Positions 7,706 to 52,889 of a DNA stretch of 64,000 nt are shown here, one piece after another. Numbering within the stretch: the stretch's first letter is position 1; every line of letters begins with the position of its first letter. Under the pieces are notes generated by a model. That model did no database searches and had not been told where the DNA came from. It saw only the letters and a program-made list of their open reading frames with translations. A program made the position numbers and the translations under genes. The DNA is taken from NCBI GenBank assembly GCA_015680685.1, contig MNCI01001410.1, positions 8,964 through 72,963 on the forward strand. Reading direction: 5' to 3'. This DNA comes from Gnetum montanum (Eukaryota > Plantae > Gnetophyta).

Positions 7706-7711
7706 TCTTTC

Positions 7712-18092: not shown

Positions 18093-18932
18093 TGATGGGA
18101 CACGATATCGCGACCGTCGCGATATCCATCCCTCGCAATATCGCATACGCAATATTGCATACGCGATATCGCGTCTTCCCCTGCAATATCGTGTACGCAA
18201 TATCGTGCTGCGCCTTCATATCTATAAATAAGAGGCGGCTCTCCCTTATTTTCTCATCCTAGGCTAGACCTTAGGGAAACTCTGGCAAATTGATCACTCC
18301 AGAGATAGAATATTTTCCATGTGCCCGCAGTAGGAGTCCTAAAGTGAACGGATCTTTATTCGAGCAAACATTGTATCAGAACATAAGTTTTTGTACGGCA
18401 ATAAAGGCAAGCTTCTTGGATAAACCTTGTAGTGCATGGAATAGGATTTTATTTACTATTATTTATTACTTTTTATTTATTACCTGTTATTTACTACTTT
18501 CTCTCCTTCTCTCCTAGTTAAGTGCCTCAGTACAACCACTTCGAGCACATGTGTTACGCGTGGTGATCCCAGCAACGATTAGTGTTTAGTAGCCACGGTT
18601 GCATCGGTTCAGGGTGTGTACAGTAAGTGGGAACGAATGCTGACGCTAGGTAATTTAGACTTGGTTCATTAGTTAGAGTTAGTAATTAGTTCCTGAACCC
18701 TTTACCTTGTTATCATAGGAGAAAAAAACATAAAAAGACTATAAAAATCATATACCTTGAGCTTACTTAACCATACACCGTGACAACTACAGGTAAGCCT
18801 AGGAAGACAACGAATGATTAACCCTAAGTGTTCCATGGGCATGTAGGCACTTAGTCTATGGAGTTCGACCGGATCACATATGCTATGCTCGTATTCGTAT
18901 GGTTGAGTGTAGGGGTATCTCACCACTCATCA
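18093..18932 (+). repeat. Element B 3' LTR
   Basis: Direct repeat of 11854-12669, preceded by the PPT at ~18077-18092. Confidence 0.95.
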
Positions 18933-19737
18933 CTATTCATCAAGAAATTCATATGTCCTATGAGGGAGATGAAATTATAATCCATGGAGATAGTGTAATC
19001 CCCTTGTCTATTAAAAATGTTGACATAGAATAAGGATTTGAGGTGGAGTTTTTAGAGGAAACTCCTACCCTCAAAAATGATGTTAAGAGATACAACGATG
19101 TAAACCAAGTCAAGACCAACAATGATGAGGCCATGAATGAAGCATGGAAAGATATCCCATTCAACGTTATTAGTGAAGGAAACAAAGAATATAAAATCAT
19201 GCAAAAAAGGCCTTATACTTTCCCTAATCTTTCAAGTATTAGGAAACAGTTGCATGATTGAGTACATCATCTAATCATCTAATTGTGTATCATACCATGT
19301 AGCCTTTTACTTTTTAGCCTAGTTTTCAACTTTTATTTACATATTTTACTTTACTTTATCTTACTTTTCAAAGTTTATTCTTATGATGCCTTATTTACTA
19401 CTTTACTACATAGCCTTTTCTTTACATTCTTGCATCAAGTTTACACTTTACGTTGATCCTCTTTTATGTCTTTTCATAAAAACATAAAACTCCATAAAAA
19501 TCTTAAACATAAAAACCAAAAAAATAATATGCTTCAAACCAAAACTTTAAAATACTATCCATAGTCATACTATGTGACAATAATAGAAATAAATTGTTCC
19601 ATAACCATAATTGCACTATATAATAATCAACAACACAAAAAATTGTACATAGTCTCCAAAGTCTATGATAGGCAAAATAAGCAACCACAACACTACAACT
19701 AAAATAAAAAAATATAGCATGACCAACATTGCCAAAA

Positions 19738-21992: not shown

Positions 21993-23243
21993 TGAAACAC
22001 CACAAAAATTTCAAGCTTAGTACTTCTCCAACAAGAACCAGGCTAAGTCATGACATTCCTCAACATGGTTGAAGCTCGAGGGCCCCGTAGATAGCTTCAA
22101 GCGGAGTCGAACTCAACAAGAAGCAGGTCCTTGGGACCCACAGACAACCACGACATCTGCTATCAAACCTGGCAACTTCGGAGCTTGAAATACTTAGTTT
22201 ACATTAAGTATGTATTCTCAGCATATACGCTCGATGCTCACAGCGTATACGCCCAGCGTATACGTCCCAGATTGCATCCCCAGTGGCGTATATGCCCAGC
22301 GTAGACGCCTCACATGTACGCTCAGCAGGTACAACTGATGTATACGCCTGGCACGTAATCCCTGAAGACGGCATGGAAACAGCATTGCAGAGCAAGGTTT
22401 GGTATAAGGCAACAACTCACACGAGTAGAGCAACCATCAGCGTATACACCCGGCAGACAGCGTATACGCCAGCATCCACAGCATATACGCCCAGTACATC
22501 TAGCATATACGCCCACAGTCTACGCCCACTTGATACAGCGTATACGCCCAGCAAATGTAACATGTACACTTGTAAATTTTATTCTTTCGCACCCGGTCAA
22601 CGCGCCACGTGTCACCCAACCCGAGTCTAATGTTAAAACCTATATAAAAACCCTAATTTTTCACTAGCCCAGGGAGGGGGTTGGTAATTTTGAGCAAAAC
22701 TAGAGAGAAAAATAGAGACGCTGAGAACTAGAGCAAAGAACCTTATACACTAGACAACCCTGTATGCTGAGCATATAGCCTCTACGCTATGCCTATAGTT
22801 TGAACCAACCAACAGTCATCCCTGCATCCACCGGGGCTATTCGTCTGCCTTGTGTCAAAGCCACAACTGCGTTAGACCGGTGCATTGTAACTCTTATTTT
22901 GAAATACCATTGTTACATTTTCTTCCTAAAATCTGTTACAATTTGCATTAATTGTTGCATGTATACTATTTACGCTCTTTTATGTTTACGCTCCGTTTGC
23001 ATTAGTTACGTTGTTTACGCTCCGCTTTACGCCTGTTACGCCGTTTACATATAACCCAGTGTATAGCACTTCAGTGTACATTCGGGGAAATCCTTGCCTG
23101 ATCCGCATGTGGACCACTCAAGGTACTCTACCTTCGTTAATTCCAGCTTGCCCTCAAGCGAAGGTAGGGTCTTCTGTGCATGTCCGGTGATCCCCCGATC
23201 TTTGTTTCCTTCCAGTCGAAGATCGACGATTTTGGACGGTACA
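21993..23243 (+). repeat. Element C 5' LTR
   Basis: Direct repeat of 38718-40022, with an AGCGTATACGC array and TATA-like tatataaaaa at ~22641. Confidence 0.96.
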
Positions 23244-23248
23244 GAAAT

Positions 23249-23266
23249 TGGTGCTAGAAGGAGGGC
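23249..23266 (+). promoter_or_regulatory. Element C PBS (tRNA-Asn GUU type)
   Basis: tggtgctagaaggagggc is complementary to the 3' end of plant tRNA-Asn (...GCCCTCCTTCTAGCGCCA) with one C>T change. Confidence 0.85.
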
Positions 23267-23289
23267 CTCTGTCTTGAACTTACTGTGCT

Positions 23290-23950
23290 TCAGAGCTCTT
23301 AGCGTCTACGCTGTTGAGTATACGTCGACCCTTTCTGCAAACCTCTCAGCGTTTACGCTACTCAGTTTAAAACTTACTGTCTGCAAACTATCCAGCGTCT
23401 ACGCTGTTGAGCGTCTATGCTGCTCCGTTTAAAAATTACCATCTGCAAGTCTCTCAGCATCTACGTTGTTAACCATACGCTGACTCTGTCTGCAAACTCC
23501 CTAGCATCTACGCTGTTGAACATACGCTGTCCGCTATACGTTGTAGACCCTGTCTATGCTATACGTTGACCCTGCACATTTTATGCTGTAGACTTTGTCT
23601 ACGCTGCACACACAACTCTGTTTATGCTGCTAACACACATGCTGCTCACTTTACGCTGTAGACTTGGTTTACGCTATGCACTAACGACATACGCTGACTC
23701 TGTCTACGCCCTACACCATAAACTCGTTTACACTACCGTCCATATACGCTACACTCTGTACACTGTAACCCCGTTTACGCTGTACGCTGATGCTGTATAC
23801 GCTGCTTAGCATATACATTGTACGCTCTATGCTGTAGATTCTCTACTCTGTATACCTATACGTTGTCTACGCTGTCATTATACGTTGGTCGTTGAAGCCT
23901 ATACGCTGAGACCCAATCTATACGCTGTGCGTCACGAATGTAGGTTTACG
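23290..23950. repeat. Element C 5' UTR array of (T)TACGCTG / TATACGCT motifs
   Basis: Dozens of tacgctg, tatacgct and tctacgct units. Confidence 0.9.
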
Positions 23951-24066
23951 TTACCCTAAGTACTCCAATTCCATATCCCTTCACTGTGTGATATTCTCTA
24001 CTATTCATCATGAACCTCGCAAACACCACCGCTACAACCACCTAGGTCACTGACATCGTAGGCACC

Positions 24067-26927
24067 ATGGCCGTCCAACAGCCCGTGGTACAACCCATAG
24101 TAGGGCCTCGCCGGTCCCTTAGATTGCAAGGGAGAAACCCATCATCTAACATCATAAATCAAGACCAGTACAACTTCATATGCGTGAAAATACAAGCCAG
24201 CCTAATCGTGGACCGAGCCAAAATGGAAGTCAAGAGGAAATACAAACTTTTCTATAGGAGAGGGCAAGAGTTCATTCCTTCCCCATACGACATCATCCCT
24301 CTTCCAGAGCCTTACGCTGAGCTCATCACACAACTCCTTCTGCAAAGGATCCAGTCGCTAGATCAGCCTGTAGTAAATCCTCAATCGAAAGAGGAGGATG
24401 AGTTCACAGCTCAATCCGAGCATGAAGACTCATACCACATCCTTAGCCCACAAACTTATATAAACTTGTTGTTTCACCCATTCACGGGCAAAACTTCGTC
24501 CCTCCAGCCACTGAACATCACGTAAGTGCATGCACCTCAACAAGACGTAGCCGCACTCGTCCCCATTCCTCCACCAATCGACATTCAAGTCAACACACTT
24601 CCCCTCACAATTCCTCCCACAGCCACGGCACCCCCATTTTTACAAATGCAACCCCCTCCAAACAATGTAGGAGTGACCTTCCCACCCCGTGTGATCGGGA
24701 CGCCGCATGTGATACCGGCATCTACATCTGCCCATTATATCCCCCGGGTCCAAACTCACAGAGCCCCTATTACCACTGTAGCTCAACAAGTTCAGGGGAT
24801 TCCTACACAAAACATGACCGGGCAATGGGCAGCGATTGGTGTTCAATCACATCAACCCCCTCACTCCAACATACCACCTCATACAATGCCACTGGTCAAC
24901 ATCCCCCAAACACAACCACAACAACAACAACCCCCTGCGTACAATATGCTGCCTCTAATACCACCCGCTATAAATATTCCACAAGTACAACCGCCAACTA
25001 CACAGCTTACAGCCTTCCAACCTACTATCCAACAATCTAACATGTACACCGTACAACATCCCCAAGCTGTCATCTCACCTAGCACTCAAGACTGGGCAGA
25101 TGCTAAAAAACTAATGCAGGAACTAACTGATGAGGTCAAACGCCTCAAGACGGCTGCCGATGGAGAGTTGAAGGTAGTGGACTTTTACCACGATGACCCC
25201 ATTAGCTCTTCCGTTCTGCCCCTAACCTTACCCAAAGGTGTATCATTACCTACGCTAACTATATATAACAAGGAGATGGACCCCAATGCCCACCTTATAA
25301 CATTTAGACTAGAATGCACATTACTTCAGGCATGGCCACACGTCATTTTGCGAGTGTTCCCTATGTCTCTGGTAGGGAGAGCACTTGATTGGTATCGGGC
25401 CTTGCCAAGGAACTCGATATTTTCTCTAGAGGAGTTGTTACATCAATTCGTTACCAGGTTCAAGTATAACTTGAAACCTGAAGCGACACTTGACAGTCTT
25501 ATACAAGTCAAACAAGCACCTCTAAAACCTGTACAAAAATTCATCCAAAGGTGGAGTGCTGCTCTCAATGAGTTACATGAGCCAATCCCCCAGATGTATC
25601 TGCTCACTATTCTAAAGGGGTCTGTCAACGACTTTTTCAAATCCAAGTTATATTATCTCAATGCGCGTAACCTCAATCAAGCCTTTGTACAGATTAAAAA
25701 CATAGAGGAGGTGGCCCAAAATAGCCACGATCTGCGTATTTAGCCTTTAAGAATCAACACAGTAAAAAAGATAAAGAAAAGGCTAAAACAACTATAGCAG
25801 CGTTGGCAGAAACACACAAGCAAACATGGGACAACAAAGCAAACCACCTATTGCCCATACTAATTACACTAAACCCACTCCTGCGATTGCACCAAAATCG
25901 TCCTCATCACAAAACCCAACACCAAACCGTACAAGAAACTTCAAAAGGAAAGAACCCTCCCAATACACACCACTACCCATGAAACCATCGCAGTTGTTTG
26001 ACCAACTCCTGAAGGCTGGGTTAATGAAACACAAACAGTTATCCCCTGCTGCAATCCAGAGACATGATCGGTTCTATCAATTGGTTCAAAACCCAAGCTT
26101 AGCAATGCCGGATGAACCCCCAGTACCAAAAGGTTTTAGAATGGATTGCTTCTGCGACTATCACCAACGTAATGGGCATGGCACGGATTACTATTTCACC
26201 TTGAAACAAGACATACAACGAATGATCAATGGAGGTCAAATCACTTTTGATGAGGCCAACCCGGTCCAACAGCAAAACCAAGCCATGGATGTGTATAAGG
26301 ATCCTCTGAATACCAAAGAGGCACCGTACGTTATTAACACAATCTACCTAGATAACGAACCTAAAACACCGAGCATTAACACTGTCTACTCTGACCATAA
26401 ACAACAACCGCCTAACAAGCCATTTGTAGTACGTATTCCTCCCACTGCATCAACATCCATGCCTCAATCATCATACGCCCCGCAGCAGCCATATGTTGTC
26501 CACGTACCCCCCGCCATAGCAACTCCTAACACCCCGACCCGCGAAAAACCATACGTGGTGCACGTACCTCCCGTCACTGCTACCGTAAACCCACCAAACC
26601 CTCCTACTCGGCCTGCCCCTTACATAGTCCAAATACCACCTACGGTCGCAATAGCGGAGGTACAACCTCCAGCTAGGCCAACTCCATACGTCGTTAGGAC
26701 ACCCAAAAGTCCTAGTGATCACCAATCCTCTAATTCCCAGATACAAAATAAACCAAGCCCCTATGTCATCAAGGTGCCTAGCTAGTTTGGTACCCAACCG
26801 CAAGTCACTGTCCAACCGTAACCCCACCAGACTCCATACGTAATACGAATTCCAAGACAACCTGAGGCCTCAAAACCAACCACGCCCCCGCGTCACACAC
26901 GAGAATGCTTAGCAGATAGGCTTACAN
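24067..26927 (+). pseudogene. gag: Element C gag (few stops, runs into an N gap)
   Basis: VFPMSLVGRALDWYRALPRNSI gag core; Tat-type knuckle FCDYHQRNGHGTD; P/Q-rich N-terminal part. Confidence 0.9.
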
Positions 26928-27209
26928 NNNNNNNNNNNNNNNNNNNNNNNNNNNNNNNNNNNNNNNNNNNNNNNNNNNNNNNNNNNNNNNNNNNNNNNNN
27001 NNNNNNNNNNNNNNNNNNNNNNNNNNNNNNNNNNNNNNNNNNNNNNNNNNNNNNNNNNNNNNNNNNNNNNNNNNNNNNNNNNNNNNNNNNNNNNNNNNNN
27101 NNNNNNNNNNNNNNNNNNNNNNNNNNNNNNNNNNNNNNNNNNNNNNNNNNNNNNNNNNNNNNNNNNNNNNNNNNNNNNNNNNNNNNNNNNNNNNNNNNNN
27201 NNNNNNNNN

Positions 27210-27911
27210 AAAATACATAGGGTCCATGTAGATGATGGAGCTGCCACAAACGTAGTCCCATATCCCATCATCGAACAACTTGGGCTCACAGAGCTAATCA
27301 GACCAACTGCCACCACATGCTTGAAATCATTCAGCGGGTCACACGTGATAGTCAAAGGCACCGTAACCTTAGACTTCATAGCAGGGGACCAATTCCCCAC
27401 ATCCGCTGACTTCGTAGTAATTGATGAGATGCCAGGATTCAACCTAATATTAGGAAGGCCCTGGTTAGCCCAACTGAAAGCAATCTCTTCCCCTATACAC
27501 CAAGAGATTCATCTACCTTATGAAGGTGGTGAAATCATCATACACGGGGAGGCCTCTAGACCCATCATCTCATCGTACATAGACATAGACCAAGGCTCAG
27601 AGGTTAAGCTCGAAGAGCCTAGACAACATGACATAAATGAACAACAACTGGTAGGCGGTAATCCTTTAAACACAGAAGAAAACCCACCCAAAGCAGAAAT
27701 ACCCCGACCAGACATTGTACATACGCAACCTCACTTAGAAACGACAATTGACACAGAAACCATGATACATGCTGAAACACAAGAAAACACTAACGCAAAA
27801 ACAATTCCATCAGACATCCCTTGGGCTGAATTACCATTCAACGTGATCAGCGAAGGGGATGCTAAATATAGAATCATACCTGCTAACTCTACTCCCAACG
27901 TTAAAATGTGA
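27210..27911 (+). CDS. Element C aspartic protease (end of gag-PR frame; stop at 27909-27911)
   Basis: The frame is open from the gap: KIHRVHVDDGAATNVVP...DFVVIDEMPGFNLILGRPWL. Confidence 0.88.
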   Translation, partial: KIHRVHVDDGAATNVVPYPIIEQLGLTELIRPTATTCLKSFSGSHVIVKGTVTLDFIAGDQFPTSADFVVIDEMPGFNLILGRPWLAQLKAISSPIHQEIHLPYEGGEIIIHGEASRPIISSYIDIDQGSEVKLEEPRQHDINEQQLVGGNPLNTEENPPKAEIPRPDIVHTQPHLETTIDTETMIHAETQENTNAKTIPSDIPWAELPFNVISEGDAKYRIIPANSTPNVKM

Positions 27912-27949
27912 AAAATCAAAAAATTACTAAACCGATAAATAACAAAAAA

Positions 27950-28250
27950 AAATGGTCCGAAATGATGTTAAACTACAACTAGTCTGGGATGACGCTAAAC
28001 TATCATGTCCGCAATGACATAAAACTAGCCACGATCAGAAATGGTTGGTCAACCAAGAAATCCACCCGTGTCATTCAAAACGTCCCTTGCTTACGCTGGG
28101 GCCCGAAATGGCCTTAAACTACACATATGGCCCGAAATGGCCTTAAACTAGTGCAAATCTAGCCCAAAATGGCCTTAAACTAGTGCGAATCTGGCCCGAA
28201 ATGGCCTTAAACTAGTGCGAATCTGGCCTGAAATGGCCTTAAACTAGATC
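27950..28250. repeat. Tandem ~30-bp repeats (ggcccgaaatggccttaaactag...) after the protease stop
   Basis: About 5 near-identical units at ~28100-28250, plus diverged atgac..aaact units from ~27955. Confidence 0.9.
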
Positions 28251-28571
28251 ATCCAATTATACTTTGTTTTCCTCTCCAATTCCGGCTCACTGTTCGAATT
28301 TACGCTTGCCCTGTTGTTAATAACAATTTTCGCAATTATCTTTCGTCTATCATTATACTCTGACTTATAATTACATCCGCGCATTACACTTAAACCACAA
28401 AAACAAACCAAAACATTTTACATTGTCGTGTCGTGTTTGCAATTAAACTCAAAATCAACAGAAAAAATTTTATACATGAAATGATGTACAAGTACAAGTG
28501 TTAACTGGTTTCATTCATCTAAATTTACAATTCCCGTATAAATTTGAGTTAGAATAATTTCACTACAAAAG

Positions 28572-31500
28572 CTAAACATCAGGGACAGGAGGATCATCCC
28601 CTTTGGACCCGCTGGCATCCTGAGCCCCCACTCCATTGGGGCCAGCTTCCTGAACATCATCATCACCTTGATCCTATAAAATGTAAAGGGAGCAATCAAC
28701 ATAAGGACAAAAGAAAAACTTTCAAACATTATGCAGCGAACGAATTTCATACTAACAAAATGCTTACCATAGGGGATCCCCCTAAGCCGAATTCCAGTCG
28801 GCGAAGGATTTCCTCTTCCGAGACACTGGTCCAATCGGTCCCATCAAGGACTAGGTTGACATCTACCAAGGCCTTCCCCTTGTCAACAGCTGACCAAGTG
28901 TGATGTTTTAAAGGGAATTCACCCATCGACACCTCCCCAGAAGCAGTTGTAATCACCCTTGTAGGCGATTCCATCTCAACAGTTGTGTTTTGAGCAAAGG
29001 TATCGAATGCAGAGCACAGACCTAGACCCTCCACAAACATCTCAAGCTTACGCTTTTCAATAGACACCTCTTTCAATGATTTCTTATAATGATGTTTCTG
29101 GTTCTTTTCATCCTGACCCCATTTTCATACCTTGGAAGCGAACGCTTTCCAATCTTGGCACTTGAGGTTTGGCAGATCCACCTGGGCCTTGCGCTTCGCT
29201 AGTTTCCGTGTCAGTGACATGCAACGATTAAGTAGGTTCCAGTATCTAGTATACGTGACCTCGGAAGTTCGCCAAGAGCGATCACCACTTAGTTTAGCAA
29301 AGGCGAACTCATANNNNNNNNNNNNNNNNNNNNNNNNNNNNNNNNNNNNNNNNNNNNNNNNNNNNNNNNNNNNNNNNNNNNNNNNNNNNNNNNNNNNNNN
29401 NNNNNNNNNNNNNNNNNNNNNNNNNNNNNNNNNNNNNNNNNNNNNNNNNNNNNNNNNNNNNNNNNNNNNNNNNNNNNNNNNNNNNNNNNNNNNNNNNNNN
29501 NNNNNNNNNNNNNNNNNNNNNNNNNNNNNNNNNNNNNNNNNNNNNNNNNNNNNNNNNNNNNNNNNNNNNNNNNNNNNNNNNNNNNNNNNNNNNNNNNNNN
29601 NNNNNNNNNNNNNNNNNNNNNNNNNNNNNNNNNNNNNNNNNNNNNNNNNNNNNNNNNNNNNNNNNNNNNNNNNNNNNNNNNNNNNNNNNNNNNNNNNNNN
29701 NNNNNNNNNNNNNNNNNNNNNNNNNNNNNNNNNNNNNNNNNNNNNNNNNNNNNNNNNNNNNNNNNNNNNNNNNNNNNNNNNNNNNNNNNNNNNNNNNNNN
29801 NNNNNNNNNNNNNNNNNNNNNNNNNNNNNNNNNNNNNNNNNNNNNNNNNNNNNNNNNNNNNNNNNNNNNNNNNNNNNNNNNNNNNNNNNNNNNNNNNNNN
29901 NNNNNNNNNNNNNNNNNNNNNNNNNNNNNNNNNNNNNNNNNNNNNNNNNNNNNNNNNNNNNNNNNNNGTGGTGTCTTCCCGTAGCCCCTCCATTTTTTCC
30001 ATCTAATCCTTGCCAGCCTCTTCCTCATCGGTCAATAACTCTGTTGTAGTTTCCTCCTCTTCAATAATAGTCTCTAATTCCTGCCTCCTCACTTCTCGAG
30101 TCAGGTCTAAAGGCATCAGTAGCATGTAAGTGGTCAAAGTAAAAATTATGAATAGGACGAAAACCATAAAGCAACAGGTGTACTAAGTTTACTTACCTCA
30201 AGCAGGCATCTTGAACCATATATGCTTAACCCATGGCTCATCCACATTTGAGGCCTCCTCGGTTGAACGTTCACACCTTGTCAACTTCGACTTGGCCTTG
30301 CCAATGGTTTCTTGGATGACCCGTTCTGCTCTTTTCGGAGTATAAGGCACATCGTCTGGTTCCAACCCCACACTGTCACGTGTGTGGATTGAGGTACCAG
30401 ATGATCCCCCTATCGTGATAGATACGGATTCATCAATTCCCTCAGGCGCATCCTTGGACTTGGCTGTTTCAAACAAGTGGTTGATCCACGGATGAGATAG
30501 TTGACCATGATCCCGCAGAACATACTTGTTGTCCGCACGAACCACTAGAAATTTGGCTAAGTGGTGAAGATAACCGGCAAAGAATGCAAAAGTAAAGTGA
30601 GACTGCACCTCGACATTTGAGCGCAATCACACTATCTCCTTATGCAGGCCCGACAACAAAAATTGGGCCCAGTTATAATGCATTCTGGTTTCTAGGATGG
30701 TTAGCATAATACGCACAACCTCAACACCAAGACTCTGCACCTGGGAAAGGGATTTAGGGAATACCCATGCCCTAAACAGGGGATATAATTCGTTCACTTC
30801 CTCAACCTTTGACTTCCCTTGCATAGGGAATCCCTTAGCACCCTTGGTAACGCCCAACCAGTCCTCTAATTCACGAACTGTATGAAGCTCTTTATGAGCC
30901 CTGTCCAAAGCTACACGTATACCATCCGTTGGTACACCAAACAGGTTTGAAAAGAATTCAGGCGACAGATGGAAAACTATCTTAACATCCTTAATTCGGG
31001 TGCTATAGTGAGAGACAGATGTGTCAAAGGAATCCACGATCCCGATCATTTCCACTATCGACACATCAGGGCTCGGGGTCGTAAAGAGCTCCATAAGGTC
31101 GGCGTCATTTAAATAACGAGCGATGGATGGCGGGGCGTGGGTATGCAACCATTTTTGAGCCTTACTGACCTCCCCGAACTTCATTGACAGGGTAGTCTCA
31201 GTTCGCCCTCTTGTGACAAGGTCCCCACCAGGGGGGACATCAACTGTAAATACAATTCGAAATCATCATATCAGTATAACCCTTGGTAGTTTAACAAATA
31301 CATTAAGACATTTAGAAAATATTGTCGCTAACCTTCAGTAGTGGACTTAGAGGTGCTACCCAAGTCAGAGTCACGAGGAAAAATTGGCCCCTTATGCGAC
31401 CAATCTTCATGCAACCACCCTCAAGCTTTGCATTATGTGAACACTCTAGAGAATCTTTTGTGAAAATGGATGATATCACCCTTTGTTTGAGCTAATATAG

Positions 31501-32114
31501 CTCCACGAAGGGTGGGACCCGCCATAAAGGTCTCTAGAGCTGTACGAGCTAGAGCAAGCCCATCATCCTCAACGCATGTTCCGTCTGGGTTGACTTGAGG
31601 CCTACAAAAGAACGGATGTCAAAACAGAAGCAAATGTCAAACGGTGAAAAGAAACAACAAGCTTAAACGGTCCTACCTATCCACTCGGTACACTATGCCA
31701 GGAGGGTTCTGGAACAACGTGTGCACGCGCGTAGCTAAAAACAGAGTGTTGTTCAGATAATCGCGCCCTCGCGGCAATTGGAGCCACATGCGCGTTAACG
31801 GGCAAGTAGACTTAGGCCCGCCAGAGGGACCACCCTCGATCACAAGCGGCCCCTCATCAATGTCTTCCATGAAGACCGCGACACCCTCCGAGGCTCCTGG
31901 CACCATGGCCTCAAGCACGCTCTGTGCCACCAGTTCACTTAGATGCGACCAGACCACCACTTTAAACCTGTCTAGGATGAAAGTGAGGAACTCACATGCC
32001 CCTTCCCTGAACCATACCCCGTTGTCATCAACGGTCAGATCGGGGGTAGGTTCATTGGCCTCAAGGGGCCCAAACCACGCCAATACCCCAACTAGGAGAA
32101 AAGGTTCAGTGTCC
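28572..32114 (-). pseudogene. Element C antisense multi-exon accessory gene: FCP1/NIF(HAD)-like pseudo-phosphatase + PMD/transposase_32-like region + charged helical tail
   Basis: Predicted exons: 32114-31677, 31601-31333, 31243-30197, 30106-(gap)-28768 and 28673-28572. The introns (75, 89, 90, 94 nt) are all GT..AG and frame-preserving. The scattered stops (TAA/TGA/TAG) are explicable by single transitions. Domain names are from motif recognition only. Confidence 0.75.
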
Positions 32115-32224
32115 CTGCAAGCAACAGAAATGCCATGGTAAATCAACCATGCATGAAAATGACACGAAAAACAAAATTTCATATTATTGGCCGACACTTA
32201 GAAAAACAAAATAAAAATTACCAA

Positions 32225-32950
32225 CTATTTACGCTCAGCGTATACGCTGCCCAACTTGGTGTATACGCTGTCAAGAACCATTTTCGCTCAGCGTATATGC
32301 CATAAAAACCCTCGGTGTATACGCTGTAAAAGCCTCCAGTGTTTACGCTATGTAACTAGTTTACACTGAACGCTGTGTAAACAATCTACATTTACGCTGT
32401 GTAACCAGTCTACGCTGAACGTTGTGTAAACAGTCTACGTTTACGCTGTGTAACCAGTCTATGCTGAACGCTATGTAAACATTCTACATTTACGCTATGT
32501 AAACAGTCTATGCTGAACACTGTGTAAACAATCTATGCTAGACGCCATGACAAACAGTCAGTGTATACGCCATGTAGACCGCCAGCGTATACGTTGTGCA
32601 AACAGTTTATGCTGAACACTGTGCAAATAAGTTTACGCTGAAAACAGTTCACACCATACACCATGAAAACAAGTCTACGCTGTACCCCACTTGAAAAGAA
32701 TTAACTGTTTACGCTCAGCATATACGCTTTGAAAATCATCAGCGTATACGCTGCGAAAACAATCAACGTACATGCTATGAAAATCTTCTACGCCTCATAA
32801 AATCATCTACACTTCACGCTGGTAAAATCGTTTACGCTGTGCATTGACAAAACAGATTACGCTACAGACAACTTAGGCTATGTACAGTATACGCTCAGCA
32901 TATAGAAACTCTCTACGCTAACTCTCTATGCTAGGTGTATACGTCGAAGC
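32225..32950. repeat. Internal array of AGCGTATACGCT / TTTACGCTG motifs
   Basis: Same motif as in C's LTR and 5' UTR; includes ~30-bp tandem units tacgctgaacgctgtgtaaacagtc. Confidence 0.9.
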
Positions 32951-33809
32951 CCTCTACGCTACCAAGACTCTCTACGGTACGAAACATGTACAGATGAAAA
33001 TAACTGACAGAGGCAGGATCAGAGCCTACCTGTGTGACGATCCAGNNNNNNNNNNNNNNNNNNNNNNNNNNNNNNNNNNNNNNNNNNNNNNNNNNNNNNN
33101 NNNNNNNNNNNNNNNNNNNNNNNNNNNNNNNNNNNNNNNNNNNNNNNNNNNNNNNNNNNNNNNNNNNNNNNNNNNNNNNNNNNNNNNNNNNNNNNNNNNN
33201 NNNNNNNNNNNNNNNNNNNNNNNNNNNNNNNNNNNNNNNNNNNNNNNNNNNNNNNNNNNNNNNNNNNNNNNNNNNNNNNNNNNNNNNNNNNNNNNNNNNN
33301 NNNNNNNNNNNNNNNNNNNNNNNNNNNNNNNNNNNNNNNNNNNNNNNNNNNNNNNNNNNNNNNNNNNNNNNNNNNNNNNNNNNNNNNNNNNNNNNNNNNN
33401 NNNNNNNNNNNNNNNNNNNNNNNNNNNNNNNNNNNNNNNNNNNNNNNNNNNNNNNNNNNNNNNNNNNNNNNNNNNNNNNNNNNNNNNNNNNNNNNNNNNN
33501 NNNNNNNNNNNNNNNNNNNNNNNNNNNNNNNNNNNNNNNNNNNNNNNNNNNNNNNNNNNNNNNNNNNNNNNNNNNNNNNNNNNNNNNNNNNNNNNNNNNN
33601 NNNNNNNNNNNNNNNNNNNNNNNNNNNNNNNNNNNNNNNNNNNNNNNNNNTCAAAATTTGTTTAAAAATTTAAGAAATAATAAATATATATATATATATT
33701 TATTACAAAATAAATACTACCACATCCTGATTCCCTTGTAAACCAACTTTAGAAGTCCACATCGAACATTTTGGCGTAGACTCTCCTGTGCAAATTTTAC
33801 GATAAACAT

Positions 33810-33990
33810 TCGGCCTGGTATGGCCTTAAACTGCCATGACGGCTCGGTATGGCCTTAAACTGCCATCATGGACCGGTAAGGCCTTAAACTTCCACATACA
33901 AACCCCCTACGGCCCGATACGGCCTTAAACTGCCACCCACGGCCCGGTAAGGCCTTAAACTACCATGCATCTCGGTGTGACAGTAAACCA
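33810..33990. repeat. Tandem repeats (ggcccggtaaggccttaaactgcca) upstream of RT
   Basis: About 5 units sharing ggccttaaact with the 28100-28250 array. Confidence 0.88.
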
Positions 33991-34075
33991 CCACCGTGCA
34001 TGTACACATGACTTATGCTACCAGAAAACATGGAATAATACCTGTTAGCTCATTCTGCTCTCTATTCATTGGTAG

Positions 34076-37000
34076 GAGCAAGCCCGATGGATTATCAGCA
34101 TTTATCCGCACCGTTAATCATCGACATAAATCTCATCCACTTAAGTTTATCAATGAACGACGCAATCATAGCCTCAACACAGCAAAAAATAGATAACTAC
34201 AAAGGTATGACAAAGCCCCTCGACATAGAAGCTGAAAACATTACCGAAGACCCGTTGACCGAAACCCCCATCACCATGCCCGATGGAGAAATTAAAATAT
34301 TAAAGCTAACACATTACTGCAACCCCAACTGGCCAAAGACCTAGAGAATGTGCTTAGGGACAACTTAAAAGCATTCGCTTGGTCTTACACCGACATGGCG
34401 TGGTTAGATCCTCGAATCGTCTAGCACAACATTATCCTTGATCCGAAATTGATGCCGGTAAAGCAAAAAGCATGAAAGGTTAAACCTGAGGTGGCATTGG
34501 CAGTTCGCAATGAGATCACCAAACTTTATCAAGCTGGTTTCATCTGGGCTGTCGATTATGCCGAGTGGGTATCCAACATGGTTATTGTCTCAAAAAAGAA
34601 CGGAAGCATTCGCTTATGCATTGACTTCTGGGATCTTAATGTTGCAACCATAAAAGATGATTTTCCCCTACCCAGCATCGATCAACTTGTTGACTCGACC
34701 ACTGGGCATGCCCTATTATCTTTTATGGATGGTTTCTCGAGATATAACCATATACACATCAACCTGGAGCATCAGCTCCAGACTACCTTTATGACACCAT
34801 GGGAAACCTTTTGCTACACAATGATGCCCTTCGGCCTCAAGAACGCTGAGGCCACATATCAAAGGGCAATGACATTCATTTTTAGCGACTACATGCTACA
34901 CTTGCTCAATGACTATGTCAATGATATCGTGGTTAAATCAAAAACACCACAACAACATGTACAAGATCTTGATTTAGTACTAAAACGTTGTTTAAAATAT
35001 GAGCTGAGACTTAACCCAAAGAAATGCGTCTTCGGTGTCAAGACAGGAAAAATGCTTGGATTTATAGCTTCAGAAGTAGGGATATGGGTAGACCCCGATA
35101 AAGTTAAGGCCATAACAAACTTAAAACCACCTGGCAACCTTACCGAACTTCGAGGTCTACAAGGTAGATTACAGTTCATCAGAAGGTTCATAGAAAAACT
35201 AACAGACAAATTAAAACCTATGAATCACTTGTTACGCAANNNNNNNNNGGTGGAGAGGTCATGTTTAGCTTTGGTCTTTTCTCTAAGAAAATGACGACAT
35301 TACCTCTTCCATAACCAAGTTAACATAATCTACAAAGATAATGTGCTCAGAGCCATCACAGGAAACATTTACGAGACAAGTCGAATAGCTCGTTGGAAAG
35401 ACATGATAGCTAAGTTTGACCTACATTACATAGCGCAATCATCCATTAAGGGTCAAGCCATAGTAAATCAAATGGCCACATCACCAACGCACGATCAAGC
35501 AACGATAGAGCCAAAATTCCCAGATGAAAATATAAGCGCAATAGACATAGTACCCAATGACTACGACGCCATTTTAAACTTTGATGGAGCATCCACCTCT
35601 CGAGGGGGAAGTGCTACCACTATCATCACCTATCCCTCTGAGGAGATCAGACCCTTTGCTTATCGTTTCAACTTTCACTGTACCAACAACATAGTAGAGT
35701 ACGAAGGTCTCCTTAGAGGTCTTGCACCAGCACTGGCTTCAGACATCACACAACTGGTGGTCAGAGGAGACTCACAACTGGTCTTAAACCAAGTCACAAA
35801 TATTTATACATGCAAAGCGCAACATTTACAACCATACTGTGACTTGGTAAAACATTTAATGAGGTAATTTAAAAACATCGATGTGTAACACGTCTCTAGG
35901 AACAATAATACCATCGCAGACACACTGGCCACCTTAGCGTTAAACATATCACCTGACATGTTCCATACATTACCAAGCTCCATAATCATTTGTGCCAAAC
36001 CAATAACCGATACTCTTGATGCGTTGCTAATTGCATCCGTTAGTACAACACACATGATAGAATGGTATGATGACATAAAAGAGTACCTTCTATGCGGTGA
36101 AACACCGCAACACTTAACGAATGCACAAAAAGATGCGGTACAAAAACGTTCTAGGCAATACGCACTGGTAGGGGACACATTGTGTCATCAACCCTACGAA
36201 GGCATATTGCTAACATGCATTGGTAGTACTAATGCCCAAACCATCGTTGAACAAGTACACGGTGGACTATGCGGAGGACACATAGCACCAAAAGCAATGG
36301 CAACAAAGATAAGATGTCTAGGCTATTATTGGCCACACATGAAGTATGATTGTCTCTCCAAGGTTAAAACATGCAGTACTTGTCAAAGACATAGTAATCT
36401 AATCCATGTCCCACCAAATGAGTTGCATACAACACAAATCACGTGGCCCTTCCAAAAGTGGGGGTTGGACCACATCGGACCACTAACATCCTCATCTTCT
36501 GCAGGGCATAGTTTCATCATAACCGCAATAGAATATTTCACGAAGTGGGTAGAAGCTATGCCCCTTCGAAAAACCACGTCTAAACACATATGCAACTTCA
36601 TTCTCGAAAATATTGTAACCCGTTTTGGCATCCCTATGACCATCATCACTGACAACAGGCCACAATTTAGCAACGCCAAAACCAAAACCTTCTGTGAAAG
36701 CCTGGGGATCAAAAACTCATTTTCATCCCCTTACTACCCCCAGAGAAATGGGCAAGTAGAGGCCACCAACAAAATGATCAATAAAATACTCAAAAAGATG
36801 CTTACCCAAAGCAAGAGAAGATGGCACAAACAATTGGTATACGCATTGTGGGCATATCGCATGACACATCAAACTTCAATAGGTAAAATGCCATATAGCC
36901 TTGTTTACGGTTCAGAAGCTGTTTTACCTTTGGAATTGCAGGTACCATCTTTAAGGATCACACTCTCTGGACTCCTCAATGAAGAGCAAAATAATGACCT

Positions 37001-37301
37001 ACGCATCATTGACCTAAACTCAGTGGAGGAGGAACGCATACGTGCACTCGATCAGATCGAGTGGTACCAAAAATAGCAACGACAACGCCAACGGCACGAC
37101 ATTCATAAGCGTCCCATAAAAGAAGGTGACCTTGTACTTAAAATTGTTCGGGAACACCAGAACAAATTCTTAGCCAACTAGGAAGGGCCTTACTTGGTCA
37201 CCAAAGCATACGACAACGAGGCATTCAAGTTAGCTGATATGGAAGGAAATGAGCTCGCAAATCCTACTAATCACTTATTCTTGAAACCGTTCCATATTTG
37301 A
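34076..37301 (+). pseudogene. pol: Element C pol: RT - RNase H - additional (archaeal-type) RNase H - integrase
   Basis: RT: IRLCIDF.DLN, LLSFMDGFS.YN, MPFGLKNA.ATYQR, YVND. RH: RHYL..RIARW. aRH: FDGAS..TNNIVEYEGLL..RGDSQLV. INT: HGGLCGGH..CSTC, WGLDHIGP, TDN, NGQVEATNK, then a GPY motif. Scattered stops. Confidence 0.95.
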
Positions 37302-37309
37302 GTACAAGC

Positions 37310-37700
37310 TCAGGTACGTGCGAGTCCTAGCATCATAACTATAAACTGATACCACAGCTCGTCTTGGAATCATGACGATAAACTGATACCATAGAACAGT
37401 CCTGGAACCATGACTTAAAATTGATACCACAGCTCGTCTTGGCATCATGATGGTAAACTGATACCACACAGTGTCTGCAATGACAATAAACTAGCACCCA
37501 TCCGGTATGACAGTAAACTGCCACAGTTGCATTCACCAGAGTCCGCTAAGACTATAAACTGGTTTGCCTCTTCACGGTCCGCCAAGACTGAAAACTGGCA
37601 ATGTACTGTCTGCCACAACACTAAACAGGCAATGTCCAACGGGTCATGACATAAAACTAACCCATGATAGTCTGCTAAGACTATAAACTGGCTTGTTCAT
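37310..37700. repeat. 3' UTR tandem repeats (atgac..taaactg core)
   Basis: About 10 diverged ~30-bp units starting directly after the pol stop. Confidence 0.85.
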
Positions 37701-38704
37701 CTCTGTTTCTTCAATCTATGGCTGCATCCAAATCGCTGCATCGCTCGCCATCGGCTAATCCTCACAACTTTGCTGCCAGCCATATACCGTGCTAGACATC
37801 TCATCCAGTGCCTTTGTTTCGCCAGTTGCTGTTTAAGTCTAAGCCTACTTACTCACCCATGGTTTTCTTGTTCTCTTGGAGTTGTGTTTACAGGATGACA
37901 CTCAGAGGTGTTCGTACAAGAATGCACTTCGTCACAAGTAGCAAGGTGAGACGTTGTTCACAGCACACATGGCAAGACTAAATCAAACCATTCACTAGTA
38001 CATCTCCATTTCTTGGTACATTTCCTCTCTATTCATCAACATACTCTACTCAGCCACACCTCTGATACACCCAGTACACTCAAAACTTTAAGCATGCTGT
38101 TGCACATTGCAACACTTTGAAGCAGTTGCAACACACAACATAGCACTTGAGCATGAGTACAAGATCAAAACAAAGCTTCTTAAAAAAAACAAAAAAAAAC
38201 AAGATGACAGTTGTCTTGAAAACAAATACTCATGTCAAAAATAATCGAGTGACATCCCGTTGCATGGCTTTGGCTCTCTGCCAAGAGGTTCCCCCTAAAA
38301 CACTAAACAAGAGCCATGTTCCTCCAAAGAATGCAACACATCATCATGTGGCTTTGGTCTCGCCAACAAGTCCTCTTGGACACTAACAAGAGTCTTGTTC
38401 CACCAAAGGATGCGCATCGCATGCCTTGATTCTGAGTCTGCTAAATAATGGCTATTGACAGGGATCAACATGATACACACCCGAGCATCCCATTTACTAA
38501 ACACAATCCTTTGGTCAGTTCCCAGTCCTCACAATCTCCATTTCCCTACCAGCTACAAATTTCACTTTCGCAATTCCATGTACTACTGAACACGGTACGA
38601 TAATGTCTAGTCAAGTGGCAAAGGACAGAGTCTTTATCGAGTTACTTGTGGTGTTTTGTACTTCTTTGTCGACGCTTCTCGGGTCGATTCCTCCAAACGT
38701 CAAC

Positions 38705-38717
38705 AAAGAAGGGCCAA
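38705..38717 (+). promoter_or_regulatory. Element C polypurine tract
   Basis: aaagaagggccaa lies immediately before the 3' LTR. A has aaagaggagctaa at 50926-50938. Confidence 0.85.
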
Positions 38718-40022
38718 TGAAACACCACAAAAATTTTGAGCTTAGTACTTCTCCAATAAGAATCGGGCTAAATCATGACGTTCCTCAGCATGGCTGAAGC
38801 TCGAGGGCCCCGTAGACAGCTTCAAGAGGAGTCGAACTCAACAAGAAGCAGGTCCCCGAGACCCACAGACGACCATGACATCTGCTATCAAACTTGGCAA
38901 CTTTGGAGCTTAAAATACTTAGTTTACACTAAGTATGTATTCTCAGCGTATACGCTGGGCGTATACGCTCGATGCTCACAGTGTATACGCCCAGCATACA
39001 TGCTCAGCGTATACGCCCAGTGTAGACGCCTCACATGTACGCTCAGTAGGTACAACTGATGTATACGCCTAGCACGTAATCCCTGAAGACGGCATGGAAA
39101 CAGCATTGCAGAGCAAGGTTTGGTATAAGGCAACAACTCACACGAGCAGAGCAACCATCAGTGTATACGCCTGGCAGACAGCGTATACGCCCAGAACATC
39201 CAGCGTATACGCCAGCATCCACAACATATACGCTTAGCGTATATACCCAGTACATCTAGCGTATACGCCCTCCATGCCCAGCGTATACACCCACAGTCTA
39301 CGCCCATCTGATACAGCATATACGCCCAGCAAATGTAACATGTACACTTGTAAATTTTACTCTTTCGCACCCGATCAACGTGCCACGTGTCACCCAACCT
39401 AAGTCTAACGTCAAAACCTGTATAAAAACCCCAATTTTTCACTAGCCTAGGGAGGGGGGTTGGCAATTTTGAGCAAAACCAGAGAGAAAAACAGAGATGC
39501 TGAGAACCAGAGCAGAGAACCTTGTACGCTGGATAACCCTGTATGCTGAGCATATAGCCTCTACACTGTGCCTACAGTTTGAACCAGCCAACAGTCATCC
39601 CTACATCCACCGGGGCTATTCGTCCACCTTGTGTCAAAGCCACAACTGCGTTAGACCGGTGCATTGTAACTCTCATTTTGAAATACCATTGTTACATTTT
39701 CTTCCTAAAATATGTTACAGTTTGCATTAACTGTTGCATGTATACTGTTTACACTCTTTTACGTTTACGCTCCGTTTGCATCAGTTACACTGTTTACGCT
39801 CCGCTTTACGCCTGTTACGCTGTTTACATATAACCCAGCATATAGCACTTCGGTGTATGTTCAGGGAAATCCTTGCTTGATCCACGTGCGGACCACTCAA
39901 GGTACTCCACCTTCGTTAATTCCAGCTTGCCCTCAAGTGAAGGTAGGGTCTTCTGTGCGTATCCGGTGATCCCCCGGTCTCTGTTTCCTTCGAGCTGGAA
40001 ACCGACGATTTTGGACGGTACA
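38718..40022 (+). repeat. Element C 3' LTR
   Basis: Direct repeat of the 5' LTR; 54 bp longer, mainly from extra GCGTATACGC units. Confidence 0.96.
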
Positions 40023-43439: not shown

Positions 43440-45240
43440 CACACACTATGGCATCATGCACCACAAGCTGTGAAGCTTGTAGTGTAGTGTGCGAAGCCTC
43501 AACCACTATCTAGATTGACTCTCATACTTTAACCTTGGCTTGGGATGATTAGTAGAGCTATATATCTCTCCAAAATTCTTAAATGCTCCCACATGAGCCC
43601 CTAGATACCAAAAAATAAGCTAAAATGGTAAAGAAAAATCTTACAACTACATTACACACTCAGTACATGAGCCTCACATGCTAGCTAGCTTGTGGAACAA
43701 CATGTGGGATTCAAACCAGTTGTTGCATGACCTTAGACAAACGTGAAAATAGATAATTTCAACCCTAAGTACTAATGGTGATGTTTATGGAGCTCTAAAA
43801 CCAAATCAGAAAGATTTAAAATTAATTAATCCTTAGCCCACATGCTAGGCACATAGACCCCACATGTTGGCTAGTGTGTGGGACAATGTTTTGACCAGAT
43901 CCTGCTACTGAAAACTACTTAATTTGACTAGTGAAAAATAAGAGAACTAAGGTGAAAGATAAGCTAATATTTAACCTCCTTTAAGTCTTTAACAATTGAG
44001 TTTAAGCCTAAGATGCTAAGCTTGTAGGCCCACACATTACCTAGTGTGTGGGCTTGAAAGAAACTCTTACTTAGCTTCTTAGGATGTCAAAATTACTATT
44101 TCTAACACAAAACCATAGGCATTAATATTAGTGGCCCTAAAGCTAAAAAAGCCAAGTCAAACAAGCTTAAAATTAACCAATATTTATCCCACACAATGGG
44201 TAGATAGACCCCACATATTGTCTAGCATATGAGGTAGCATGTGAAAAGTTTCGATAGGTTTTTGACACTAAAAATGGCTCAAAATTTTATTGTTAGAGCT
44301 TGGGAATCTTAAATGGGAAGTAAAGCTAATATTTAACCCTATTTGATTCAAGAAAAGTGAGTTTCGCACTCACATGATGGGCCTGTGGGCTCCACACACT
44401 ACCCAACATGTGGGATAGAATGTGGGCTTCAAACTAGCCCTTGGTTAACTTATTTTAGCTTGAAAACACCTATTTTTAACACTAAAACCTATGCACTATC
44501 CTAGAAACCTAATATGGCAAAAGGGCTACCTTTAATAACTTCATGAACCAAACACTAAGCTCTCATACACTAGGACCCTAGCCTCACATGCTACCCAACA
44601 TGTGGGATACCATGTGAGGTCTTTGAAAACCTTCTACTGCTTAAACTAACTCCAAATTTAGTTCATCTCACATCCTAGGCCACTACACTAACACAAAAAG
44701 TCTATAATAGTTAAAACTAGTCAAAAGAGCCTCCCCTCAAACTAAGTCTTCAACTCTACATATTGGCAACACAAGTGCCACACGCTGGTCAGCATTTGGG
44801 CCAATGTAGGGGATATAAATAAGCTTTTTACTAGTCCAAAATCACTCCTCATAAAAGCTACCTAGACCCTTCTCTAGAGTCTTAATATTACCATAGAAGC
44901 CTAAGAGTGTTAAATACTGAGTCAAAATCACTTGAAAATTATATGGTCAAATTCAACATGTTGGGATACTAGAACCACATTTTGTACAACATGTGGGCTC
45001 AACGTGTAAAAGTTTGGTAGGCAAAGAACTCAATTCAAACTCGCTAATCCTCAGTCCAAGACACTCTAAGAAGCCCTACACTTGCCTTACACAGTATAGA
45101 GATGATCAAACTAAGTCAAAAAAATCCTAAACTTAACAAGAATCCTTCACATGCTAGGGATTTGGATTCCACATGCTATGATGTTAGGCTAGACTGCTCA
45201 CAAATTGAGTGAATAGTTCTCACATGCTAGGGATTTAGCA
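43440..45240. repeat. Element A internal array of CCACATGCTAG / CATGTGGG motifs
   Basis: Many cacatgctag...catgtggg inverted-arm units; the same motif occurs in A's LTR (~6700-7050) and 5' UTR (~7780-8250). Confidence 0.75.
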
Positions 45241-48600: not shown

Positions 48601-49801
48601 TGAATCTCCACTAAACAAAACTACTTCTCAAAAGAACACTATATGTAAAAGATCAAAATAATATTTCATTATTGCTGATAACACATTATGTTAAAGGTCT
48701 TATGATGACATATTTTTGGTGTTCTTGGGCAAAATCGAAGCTTTCATAGTCCTTAAGTAGGTCCACAAAGATGTATGTGAAGGACATAAAGGACCCACAA
48801 CCATTGCTACAAAGATTAGAGAATTAGAATACTATTGGCCCTATCTAGAAAGTGCCTAGTTGTAGAAGGTTAAAAATTGTGATGCCTGTTAATAACATGG
48901 CAACTTAATACATGTGCCACCAATTGAAATACGTACTACTTAGATCACATGACTATTTCAATGATGGGGAATAGACATTATTGGACTTATAAATTCTAAG
49001 CCTTCTATAGGGCATAGATTCATCATCATCACAATTGAATATTTTACAAAGTGAGTTGAAGCTATTCCTCTAAGGAAAACAAGCTTCAACAAGTTTGTAA
49101 ATTCATACTAAACAACATAGTGTTCTATTTTGGCATACCCTTAACTATAGTTACAGACAATAGACCATAGTTCAATAGCCAAGAAATCCAAGGCTTTTGT
49201 AAATAATTAAGCATCAATAATTTCATTTCATCACCATATTATCCTTAAGCTAATGGGAAAGTTGAAGCAAGCAATAAGATGATCATAAACCTTCTTAAAA
49301 ATATGTCAAATAATAGCAGAAGTAAGTGGCATAAGCAACTTGTGCATGCACTTTGGACCTATAGAATAACCTTTCAAATCATAATTAGTGTAACCTTGTA
49401 TATCCTTGTTTATGAATTAGAATCTATTTTACCTCTTAAGTTGTAAGTGCCATCCTTTAGGGTAACTCTATCTAACTTGAGCAATGATGAATAAGATAAG
49501 GATATTTTTATCATTAACCTCAATTTGATGAAGTAGTAAATACCAATGCTTGCTCACATCGAACAATATCAAGAGAAACAAAAATAATACATCATCATGA
49601 TTCAAATAGACAAAAATTTAGGAAAGAAGATCTAATCCTTAAGGCCATTAATGAAAATACAGAAAAATTCTTGGCCAATAGGAAGGACCTTTCTTTATCA
49701 TCAAAGCTTATGGAAACATAGCATTAAGATTGGTGGACATAGATGGGAATGAATTGGCCAACCTAGTCAGTAATTCCTACCTCAAACCTTATTATATCTA
49801 A
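45657..49801 (+). pseudogene. pol: Element A pol (RT-RH-aRH-INT), degenerate, interrupted by a solo LTR
   Basis: YQQAMIHIFSDYMLGLLDDYVDDI and CLKYELRLNPKKCVF are recognisable. aRH and INT segments are collinear with C to the terminal LKPYYI*. Confidence 0.88.
47159..47841 (+). mobile_element. Solo LTR of the B-related family
   Basis: TGATGAGC...GCTCATCA termini, perfect TSD ATAAT, no PBS or PPT. Excision restores A RNase H (aaggataat|gtactaagagcc versus C aaagataatgtgctcagagcc). Confidence 0.95.
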
Positions 49802-52114: not shown

Positions 52115-52889
52115 AGAGGACTCTAGTGATTGTAGAGTTAGTTGGCATCTTGTGCTTCATGGAAATTGTAGTTCCAAACTATCCTATCCCTAATGTGATA
52201 ATTAATGAAAACATGAAAGTATGATTTCATCGTAGAGTAGTTGAGTTTTTGTTCTATCTACTTTCGAATTTATTATGATCCTTTGTTTACATCTGAGTGT
52301 ATCCATAATGGACATGATATTGGAAATCATTCATGTCTAAGCTTTGAGCAATGTTTTAGAATACATGCAAGGTGAAGATTCCGGTTAAATTGAGCTAGCA
52401 TACTAAATAATATCATAATGGTCTATGGTTCAAAATTTCTCTAAGATTTGGCACCAATGAGGTATCAACATAGTGGTAAGACACTTGATTTGGAAGCTCC
52501 AGGTCATGGGTTTGATTCCAAAACATACCTATAGGTGTTTGAATGCAAATAATACTATTTTGCTCACTTGAAAAACTTTGAATTTGTTTTGCAATCCACT
52601 TGCAAATGGTTAATTGATTAACATGTAAGTATATAATTTACCTTTTCTTAACTTATGATTATTCATTTTTTACATTGCTCCTAAGATTATGTGGTTTAAT
52701 ACTATGCATGCTTTACAATTATAATATTAACAAAGAACAAGCTTTCATAGTGAATGATACTTTGGTTCTCACATAGATGATGTTGAATGCGATTTCACAA
52801 GGTGACCAAATCAAAATTCAAATAGTAATTCAAATTATATTTGAAATAGAGAACTATAATAGATGATATTACCAAGTGTATCAATGATG
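52115..52889 (+). repeat. Near-identical duplicate of 54579-55353
   Basis: Only a handful of substitutions over 775 bp; the second copy starts at an N gap. Confidence 0.95.
52461..52520 (+). other. Decayed tRNA-like segment (possible SINE head)
   Basis: tagtggtaag (A-box-like) and gggtttgattcc (B-box-like, GGTTCGATTCC with C>T) at tRNA-like spacing. Confidence 0.35.

Follow-up and report, generated by a model that had tools for sequence, protein, structure and literature searches.

A decayed multi-exon antisense gene with a probable NIF/FCP1-like domain between protease and reverse transcriptase of a Tat-lineage retrotransposon in Gnetum montanum

The window analyzed here is a 64,000-nucleotide stretch of the Gnetum montanum genome (assembly GCA_015680685.1, contig MNCI01001410.1, positions 8,964 to 72,963 of the forward strand) with a plant-like GC content of 37.6% and eight runs of N. 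It contains an 18-kb long terminal repeat (LTR) retrotransposon at window positions 21993-40022, here called element B, whose LTRs share 92.5% identity, with TTAAG and CTAAG next to them as a 5-bp target-site duplication. An intron-bearing gene runs opposite to the coding direction of this element and occupies a 6.3-kb spacer between the protease (PR) frame, which ends at 27911, and the reverse transcriptase (RT) frame, which starts at about 34200-34491. An earlier sequence-only reading had placed this gene in antisense orientation inside pol. The gene is indeed antisense and borne by the element, but it lies in a spacer between the gag-PR and RT open reading frames (ORFs), and pol is not continuous there. 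Coordinates of the gene, its element and the related copies are collected in Table 1.

Pfam domains follow one another along element B in the order Retrotrans_gag, RVT_1, RVT_3 with RNase_H, Integrase_H2C2 and rve. This corresponds to gag, PR, RT, ribonuclease H (RH) and integrase (INT) with an extra archaeal-type RNase H between RT and INT, the feature by which the Tat lineage is recognized, and it is the domain order described for Tat elements (PMC6317226, PMC4408406). Judged by its domains, element B is a Tat-lineage Ty3/gypsy retrotransposon, divided in the manner of Ogre between one ORF for gag-PR and another for RT-RH-INT. The best database matches of the integrase are 38-52% identical, with Cryptomeria among them. 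Pol of element B, like the antisense gene, is interrupted by stop codons, so that the whole element is dead.

The copy of the antisense gene in element B, copy B, is a chain of open frames on the minus strand from 32197 to 28572, broken by four short GT..AG segments. Four introns of this type had been proposed from the sequence alone, and all four are present. They measure 75-94 nt and have a GC content of 0.28-0.39, compared with 0.47-0.56 in the exon pieces they separate and 0.36-0.41 in the flanks. The peptides quoted in the sequence-only reading were also found in the sequence. In the stop-free pieces the codon positions show a bias of coding type, with G at 37% of first and 17% of second positions. 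The idea of one phase-preserving frame held in part: introns 1-3 join frames and intron 4 is in phase 0, but five to six stops interrupt the reading and a run of N splits exon 4. The start assigned to the gene at 32114 proved arbitrary, as the same frame is open up to 32197 and includes an ATG at 32182. At least five exons, separated by short AT-rich introns of the GT..AG type, make up the gene.

Exon 2 of copy B has two in-frame stops; the others are one inside exon 3 (30629-30627), a TGA at 30199-30197 that directly precedes the donor of intron 3, a TAG at 30005-30003, and one at 29124-29122. Copy B is a pseudogene. Neutral substitution was simulated at half the LTR divergence (the LTRs are 7.5% apart), which gave 2.8 new stops expected per 792 codons with a 5-95% range of 0-6. 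The observed number is within this expectation and fits neutral decay, since the insertion of element B, of a gene that was intact at that time.

Table 1. Antisense gene copies in the window and main features of element B
Feature	Position	Strand	Basis or remark
5' LTR of element B	21993-23243	+	TG..CA ends
gag and protease ORFs, element B	24526-27911	+	Pfam Retrotrans_gag; PR homologous to that of element A
Last exon (exon 5), acidic tail and stop	28673-28572	-	frame reading
Intron 4, 94 nt, phase 0; links post-gap frame to exon 5	28767-28674	-	GT..AG
Coding region past gap, one stop	29313-28768	-	weak similarity to A 20328-20158
N run (assembly gap) within exon 4	29314-29967	.	sequence
Exon 4, acidic, readable part, TAG 30005-30003	30106-29968	-	frame reading
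Intron 3, 90 nt, phase 1	30196-30107	-	GT..AG
Exon 3, conserved domain of ~350 codons, no known family	31243-30197	-	internal stop and TGA near donor
Intron 2, 89 nt, phase 1	31332-31244	-	GT..AG
Exon 2, end of putative NIF-like domain and linker, two in-frame stops	31601-31333	-	frame reading
Intron 1, 75 nt, phase 2, GC 0.39	31676-31602	-	GT..AG
Exon 1, likely NIF/FCP1-like HAD domain without catalytic aspartates	32197-31677	-	open frame
Region 5' of antisense gene	32214-32950	.	AGCGTATACGCT arrays and 49-bp tandem repeats; presumed promoter
RT, RVT_3-type RNase H and integrase, element B	34491-37076	+	Pfam RVT_1, RVT_3, rve, Integrase_H2C2
3' LTR of element B	38718-40022	+	TG..CA ends
Copy A, 5' half: NIF-like exon, introns 1-2, start of exon 3	41483-40049	-	cut by element B
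Copy A, 3' half: rest of exon 3, intron 3, charged exon, downstream exons	21945-~20158	-	similarity to B and C
Copy C: exon 3, intron 3, acidic exon, downstream exons	63979-62239	-	5' part past window end
Copy D: exon-3 fragment, heavily decayed	55656-56240	+	similarity to exon 3

Three other copies of the gene, A, C and D, are present in the window. Copy A belongs to an older retrotransposon, element A, with LTRs at 6535-7703 and 50945-52100 that are 77.5% identical, gag at about 9586, PR at 11695 and 18878-19201, RT at 46105 and INT at 48461-49575. The insertion site of element B is within exon 3 of the antisense gene that element A itself carries, and the frame of copy A is collinear across this site. 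Copy A lies between PR and RT of its element in antisense orientation, which is the layout of element B.

The protein of copy B is similar to the three other copies with E-values of 1e-18 to 1e-22 within the window. Copies A and B are 28% identical in the NIF-like exon and 29-32% in exon 3, and C and B share 36% identity over 129 residues. Exon 3 is the best conserved part among copies A to D, that of B being 29-36% identical to those of A, C and D. At the DNA level, no similarity is left outside the LTR pairs. Elsewhere in elements A and B, protein identity amounts to 45-51% for RT, integrase and gag and to 30-33% for gag2, the 5' ORF and part of PR. The divergence of the antisense gene (28-36% identity) is comparable to that of gag2, PR and the 5' ORF of the same elements. 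With proteins about 30% identical, the synonymous sites of the copies in the window are saturated.

Conservation of the splice junctions in sister copies, suggested earlier as a check on the gene structure, was observed for introns 1-3 in A and for intron 3 also in C. The counterpart of intron 1 in copy A (41067-40979, 89 nt, GTAAGT..TTATAG, GC 0.27) is in phase 2 and is located two codons from the position in B. Intron 2 corresponds to a 172-nt GT..AG segment with a GC content of 0.23 at the exon 2/3 boundary (40717-40546). The counterparts of intron 3 (A 21495-21332, C 63073-62982) are AT-rich GT..AG segments that follow exon 3 and are themselves followed by a charged exon, as in B. A 'DPDG' match considered for exon 2 in copy A was dropped, being an overlap in another frame. 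Diverged families keep the place, orientation and intron positions, and on this comparison the antisense gene is inherited with the element.

Collinearity also bears on the assembly gap within exon 4 of copy B. The length of this gap is only an estimate, nominally 654 nt or 218 codons. Past the gap, B 29121-28768 resembles A 20328-20158 (shuffle test z of 4.6, 2 of 1000 shuffles); the sequence of B adjoining the gap gave no significant match to A or C in the shuffle test. Copies A and C have a downstream exon pair in common (A 21013-20915 and 20795-20553; C 62649-62551 and 62481-62239) without counterpart in the readable sequence of B, and A 20328-20158 is located further downstream than this pair. 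Because A, B and C are collinear, the gap probably holds the counterpart in B of the exon pair shared by A and C.

To identify the encoded domains, database and profile searches were run exon by exon. Exon 1 of copy B gave a match to the Pfam NIF family (PF03031) with an E-value of 2.7e-4 and 21.1 bits, covering profile positions 35-76. The same profile positions were matched by copy A (E 0.037, 14.1 bits), for which NIF was the only match; in both copies it is the sole or top-ranking family. With the language-model features of the ESM Atlas, NIF was found in 29 of the 30 clusters nearest to exon 1, the best score being 0.92 with 192 shared features. A profile built from copies A and B had UBLCP1 (3shq_A) as its best match in the PDB, with an E-value of 0.044 over 100 residues that include HAD motifs II to IV. 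No match of exon 1 was obtained by phmmer against PDB sequences or by a word-index protein search. The FCP1/NIF-like character proposed in the sequence-only reading is thus supported, and from four weak but concordant results exon 1 is likely homologous to the NIF/FCP1 domain.

The catalytic residues of this domain are replaced. HAD motif I, DxDx(T/V), is absent: copy B reads LLVGVL and copy A ILHGGS, about 27 residues before a conserved W-F-R motif. Motif II keeps its Ser/Thr: aligned with IVIWS of UBLCP1, copy B has VVVWS and copy A has MIMWS. Motif IV lacks its DD, since FDD of UBLCP1 is opposite LAT in B, and VGH is found at the homologous place in A. With the catalytic residues gone in both readable copies, the domain, if working, is not a phosphatase, and would at most be a pseudo-phosphatase. 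Of the earlier suggestion of a repurposed phosphatase of the RNA polymerase II C-terminal domain (CTD), the homology to NIF is likely, and repurposing can only be surmised.

For the conserved domain in exon 3 a plant mobile domain (PMD) or Transposase_32 relationship had been proposed. Exon 3 of B gave no Pfam match at E-values up to 10, and the scanned exon-3 pieces of A and C gave none at E-values up to 1 or 10. An exhaustive HMMER search with exon 3a against 1.84 billion representatives gave no match, and a profile of exon 3b built from three copies found no database match. The ESM Atlas gave weak leads with scores of 0.82-0.87, to unnamed streptophyte clusters, ATHILA ORF-1 (0.84), DUF1985 (0.83) and PMD (0.82). 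A PMD, Transposase_28 or Transposase_32 identity of exon 3 is not supported by Pfam, and the PMD or Transposase_32 relationship is at most a putative resemblance.

The region upstream of the antisense gene shares a sequence motif with the LTRs. With up to one mismatch, the palindrome AGCGTATACGCT has 18 occurrences in the window against an expectation of 0.02, and all are in element B. The sites are found at 22220-23907 and 38945-39269, which cover both LTRs and the 5' untranslated region (UTR), and, next to the antisense gene on its upstream side, at 32237-32752. Also upstream of the gene is a 49-bp sequence repeated in tandem about five times (32321-32630). Element A has its own, different motif, CACATGCTAG, with 32 occurrences against 3.9 expected. 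Its clusters at 6702-8123, 43675-45230 and 51134-51428 occupy the same three compartments, LTRs, 5' UTR and gene upstream region, and the cluster at 43675-45230 is the one upstream of copy A. The motif CACATGCTAG is also present at 59589-59943, in an LTR-like fragment near copy D. The recurrence of the LTR motif upstream of the gene, family by family, suggests that the gene has an internal promoter responding to the factor to which the LTR responds.

Arrays of a different, 29-32-nt motif (GGCC..ATGGCCTTAAACT) are located at both ends of the spacer of element B, at 28100-28250 and 33783-33961. Within the window, the ATGGCCTTAAACT-ending motif is confined to these two arrays and to the plus strand. 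A role of these arrays in handling the long sense-strand spacer is a possibility.

We explain these observations by proposing that copy B is a decayed copy of an accessory gene carried by the Tat-lineage retrotransposon itself, antisense in the PR-RT spacer, and give this reading a probability of about two in three. Lying antisense to the genomic RNA, the introns of such a gene would never be spliced from it and would in this way outlast retrotransposition. The gene would be transcribed from its own internal promoter, and through the family-specific palindromic motif shared by promoter and LTR the gene and the element could be co-regulated. The protein might work without catalysis as a pseudo-phosphatase adaptor, its dead NIF domain binding a phosphorylated partner. 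Candidate partners would be the RNA polymerase II CTD or a substrate or client of host CTD-phosphatase-like enzymes. Targeting may be provided by the 350-residue domain and the acidic tail, and the gain for the element could be transcription or escape from silencing.

Several points weigh against this explanation. All four copies in the window are broken, and at the nominal gap length the open frames before and after 29314-29967 in copy B differ. The Pfam NIF scores of B and A are both under the gathering threshold of 21.8 bits. AlphaFold2 single-sequence models were too poor for a fold search, with a mean predicted local distance difference test (pLDDT) score of 40 for exon 1 and a pLDDT of 43 for exon 3a. 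No part of the gene has a relative in the protein databases searched, and therefore the gene is known only from this genome. The binding role given to the dead NIF domain is pure conjecture.

The state of the gene would also suit a passenger, that is, a fragment of a host NIF-family gene that was captured with its introns in reverse orientation by an ancestor and copied along without serving the element. Gene capture by LTR elements is documented (review PMC7264820), the catalytic residues have been lost and every copy in the window is broken. Useless cargo, however, should not stay recognizable as a protein, collinear and in one frame, while RT and INT fell to 45-51% identity and non-coding similarity vanished. 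Copies A and C moreover keep the intron positions and the GC contrast between exons and introns, and the upstream region follows each family's own LTR motif, which makes a passenger unlikely. The same conservation at the protein level and in a single frame, with introns and flanks not conserved, speaks against a role of the antisense RNA as the product, through double-stranded RNA or interference with the sense transcript and with no protein involved. Regulatory antisense transcripts of LTR elements are known (PMC7264820, PMC12786077), but the codon-position bias and the recognizable protein domain are not accounted for by such a role, and we consider it quite improbable here.

Nesting is common in the window, as seen for element B within A, and the same direct-motif arrays occur at both ends of the spacer, so that another mobile element might have landed independently between PR and RT. 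The position and orientation of the gene are, however, alike in A and B, and the block has no terminal inverted repeats, LTR-like long repeats, transposase or second RT. It bears instead the LTR motif of its own host element. The sequence-only reading had named flanking terminal inverted repeats as a sign of such an event; the repeat search found no inverted repeats around the spacer and an independent insertion is not indicated. We regard it as highly improbable. It can also be asked if ORFs and GT..AG pairs were picked after the fact from a non-coding spacer, since both dinucleotides are frequent, stops interrupt the frame and candidate sites were open to choice. The significant protein similarity to three other copies, the independent matches of two copies to Pfam NIF and the clear exon/intron contrast in GC content leave next to no probability for chance.

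A more specific function can be imagined, in which the gene encodes an element-specific regulator with a role like that of retroviral Tat, Tax or HBZ. The 350-residue domain would then read the family palindrome, and the dead NIF domain would hold the phosphorylated RNA polymerase II CTD or trap substrates of silencing-linked host CTD-phosphatase-like enzymes. The motif differs between families A and B, as does the protein. If this were true, a transcription or anti-silencing factor would be encoded by the element itself, in a gene that keeps its introns through being antisense to the genomic RNA. We regard this version as distinctly unlikely.

An accessory gene carried by the element itself has partial parallels in other Tat elements. 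In Ogre elements an intron separates the gag-pro ORF from the RT-RH-INT ORF (Neumann 2019, PMC6317226, which cites Steinbauerova 2008), and their gag-pro/RT spacer has a mean length of 274 bp with no gene in it (PMC6317226). Element B resembles Ogre in its separate gag-PR and RT-RH-INT ORFs, the RVT_3-type RNase H between RT and integrase and its very large size of 18 kb. It differs by a spacer of about 6.3 kb with a multi-exon antisense gene, and sense splicing is putative here. Extra ORFs of Tat elements either precede gag or lie after pol, before the 3' LTR, and encode PMD, Transposase_28 or coiled coils (PMC4408406, PMC7264820, PMC11963269). The antisense extra ORFs of Retand, Grande and RIRE2 are, like the gene described here, element-borne Tat-lineage antisense genes that are conserved across families and probably have their own promoter. 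Theirs, however, are located downstream of integrase and before the 3' LTR, with Transposase_28 or PMD domains, whereas the gene of element B is between PR and RT, has introns and a NIF-like start, and gives no Transposase_28 or PMD match.

In the NIF phosphatases (PF03031: FCP1, SCP1, UBLCP1, Dullard and TIM50) it is the central part of the profile that is matched by two diverged copies of the antisense gene. Unlike these enzymes, A and B have other residues in place of the DxDxT nucleophile motif and of the DD in motif IV, the scores are just under the threshold, and the fold is putative. Arabidopsis PMD proteins have phosphatase-like partners: MAIN and MAIL1 act with PP7L, and MAIL3 is a PMD-phosphatase fusion. 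In these proteins, too, a transposon-related domain is joined to a phosphatase-like, possibly inactive, module. They differ in having a PPP-type rather than a HAD-type fold and in being host genes, and exon 3 has no shown PMD identity. Retroviral antisense genes of the HTLV-1 HBZ type (PMC7264820) likewise code for protein, run opposite to gag-pol and have their own promoter, but HBZ is unrelated in sequence, and the gene of element B lies within a spacer of the pol region and not near the 3' LTR.

A full-text search of the published literature found no NIF/FCP1 domain in an LTR element, no antisense gene between PR and RT, and no intron-bearing antisense accessory gene. Antisense accessory genes of Tat elements as such are known; the position, introns and domain seen here appear to be new. 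Pol split by a multi-exon antisense gene would be a new arrangement among the genome plans known for LTR elements, and the gene would be a natural case of introns kept through antisense orientation. The extra ORFs of plant LTR retrotransposons, of unknown function, are known only from the two places named above, before gag and after pol, and none has a recognizable enzyme-type fold of the NIF kind. A NIF-like pseudo-phosphatase domain would give a biochemical handle on these accessory proteins, since binding of phosphorylated CTD or of other phosphoproteins can be assayed. The motif arrays common to the LTR and the gene upstream region suggest a regulatory circuit that is testable. Where plant genomes are very large and consist in good part of elements of this type, such a gene would rank among the most abundant coding sequences, yet it is absent from protein databases.

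Some minor observations concern the elements themselves and their surroundings. Both elements have a sense ORF directly upstream of gag (A 8681-9070, B 24067-24525), with 32% identity over 141 residues. A Pfam scan of this ORF gave no match; it may correspond to the extra ORF that Ogre elements have on their 5' side. Beside the 3' LTR of element A there is a GC-rich 2.5-kb block (52202-54839) between identical direct repeats at 52202-52375 and 54666-54839. Its long ORFs are alanine/threonine-rich and zinc-knuckle-like, a Pfam scan of two of them gave no match, and the block looks like a separate insertion. A further Tat-type element with RT, RNase H and integrase is located on the minus strand at 1335-4669, and its pre-RT peptide is 52% identical to that of element B.

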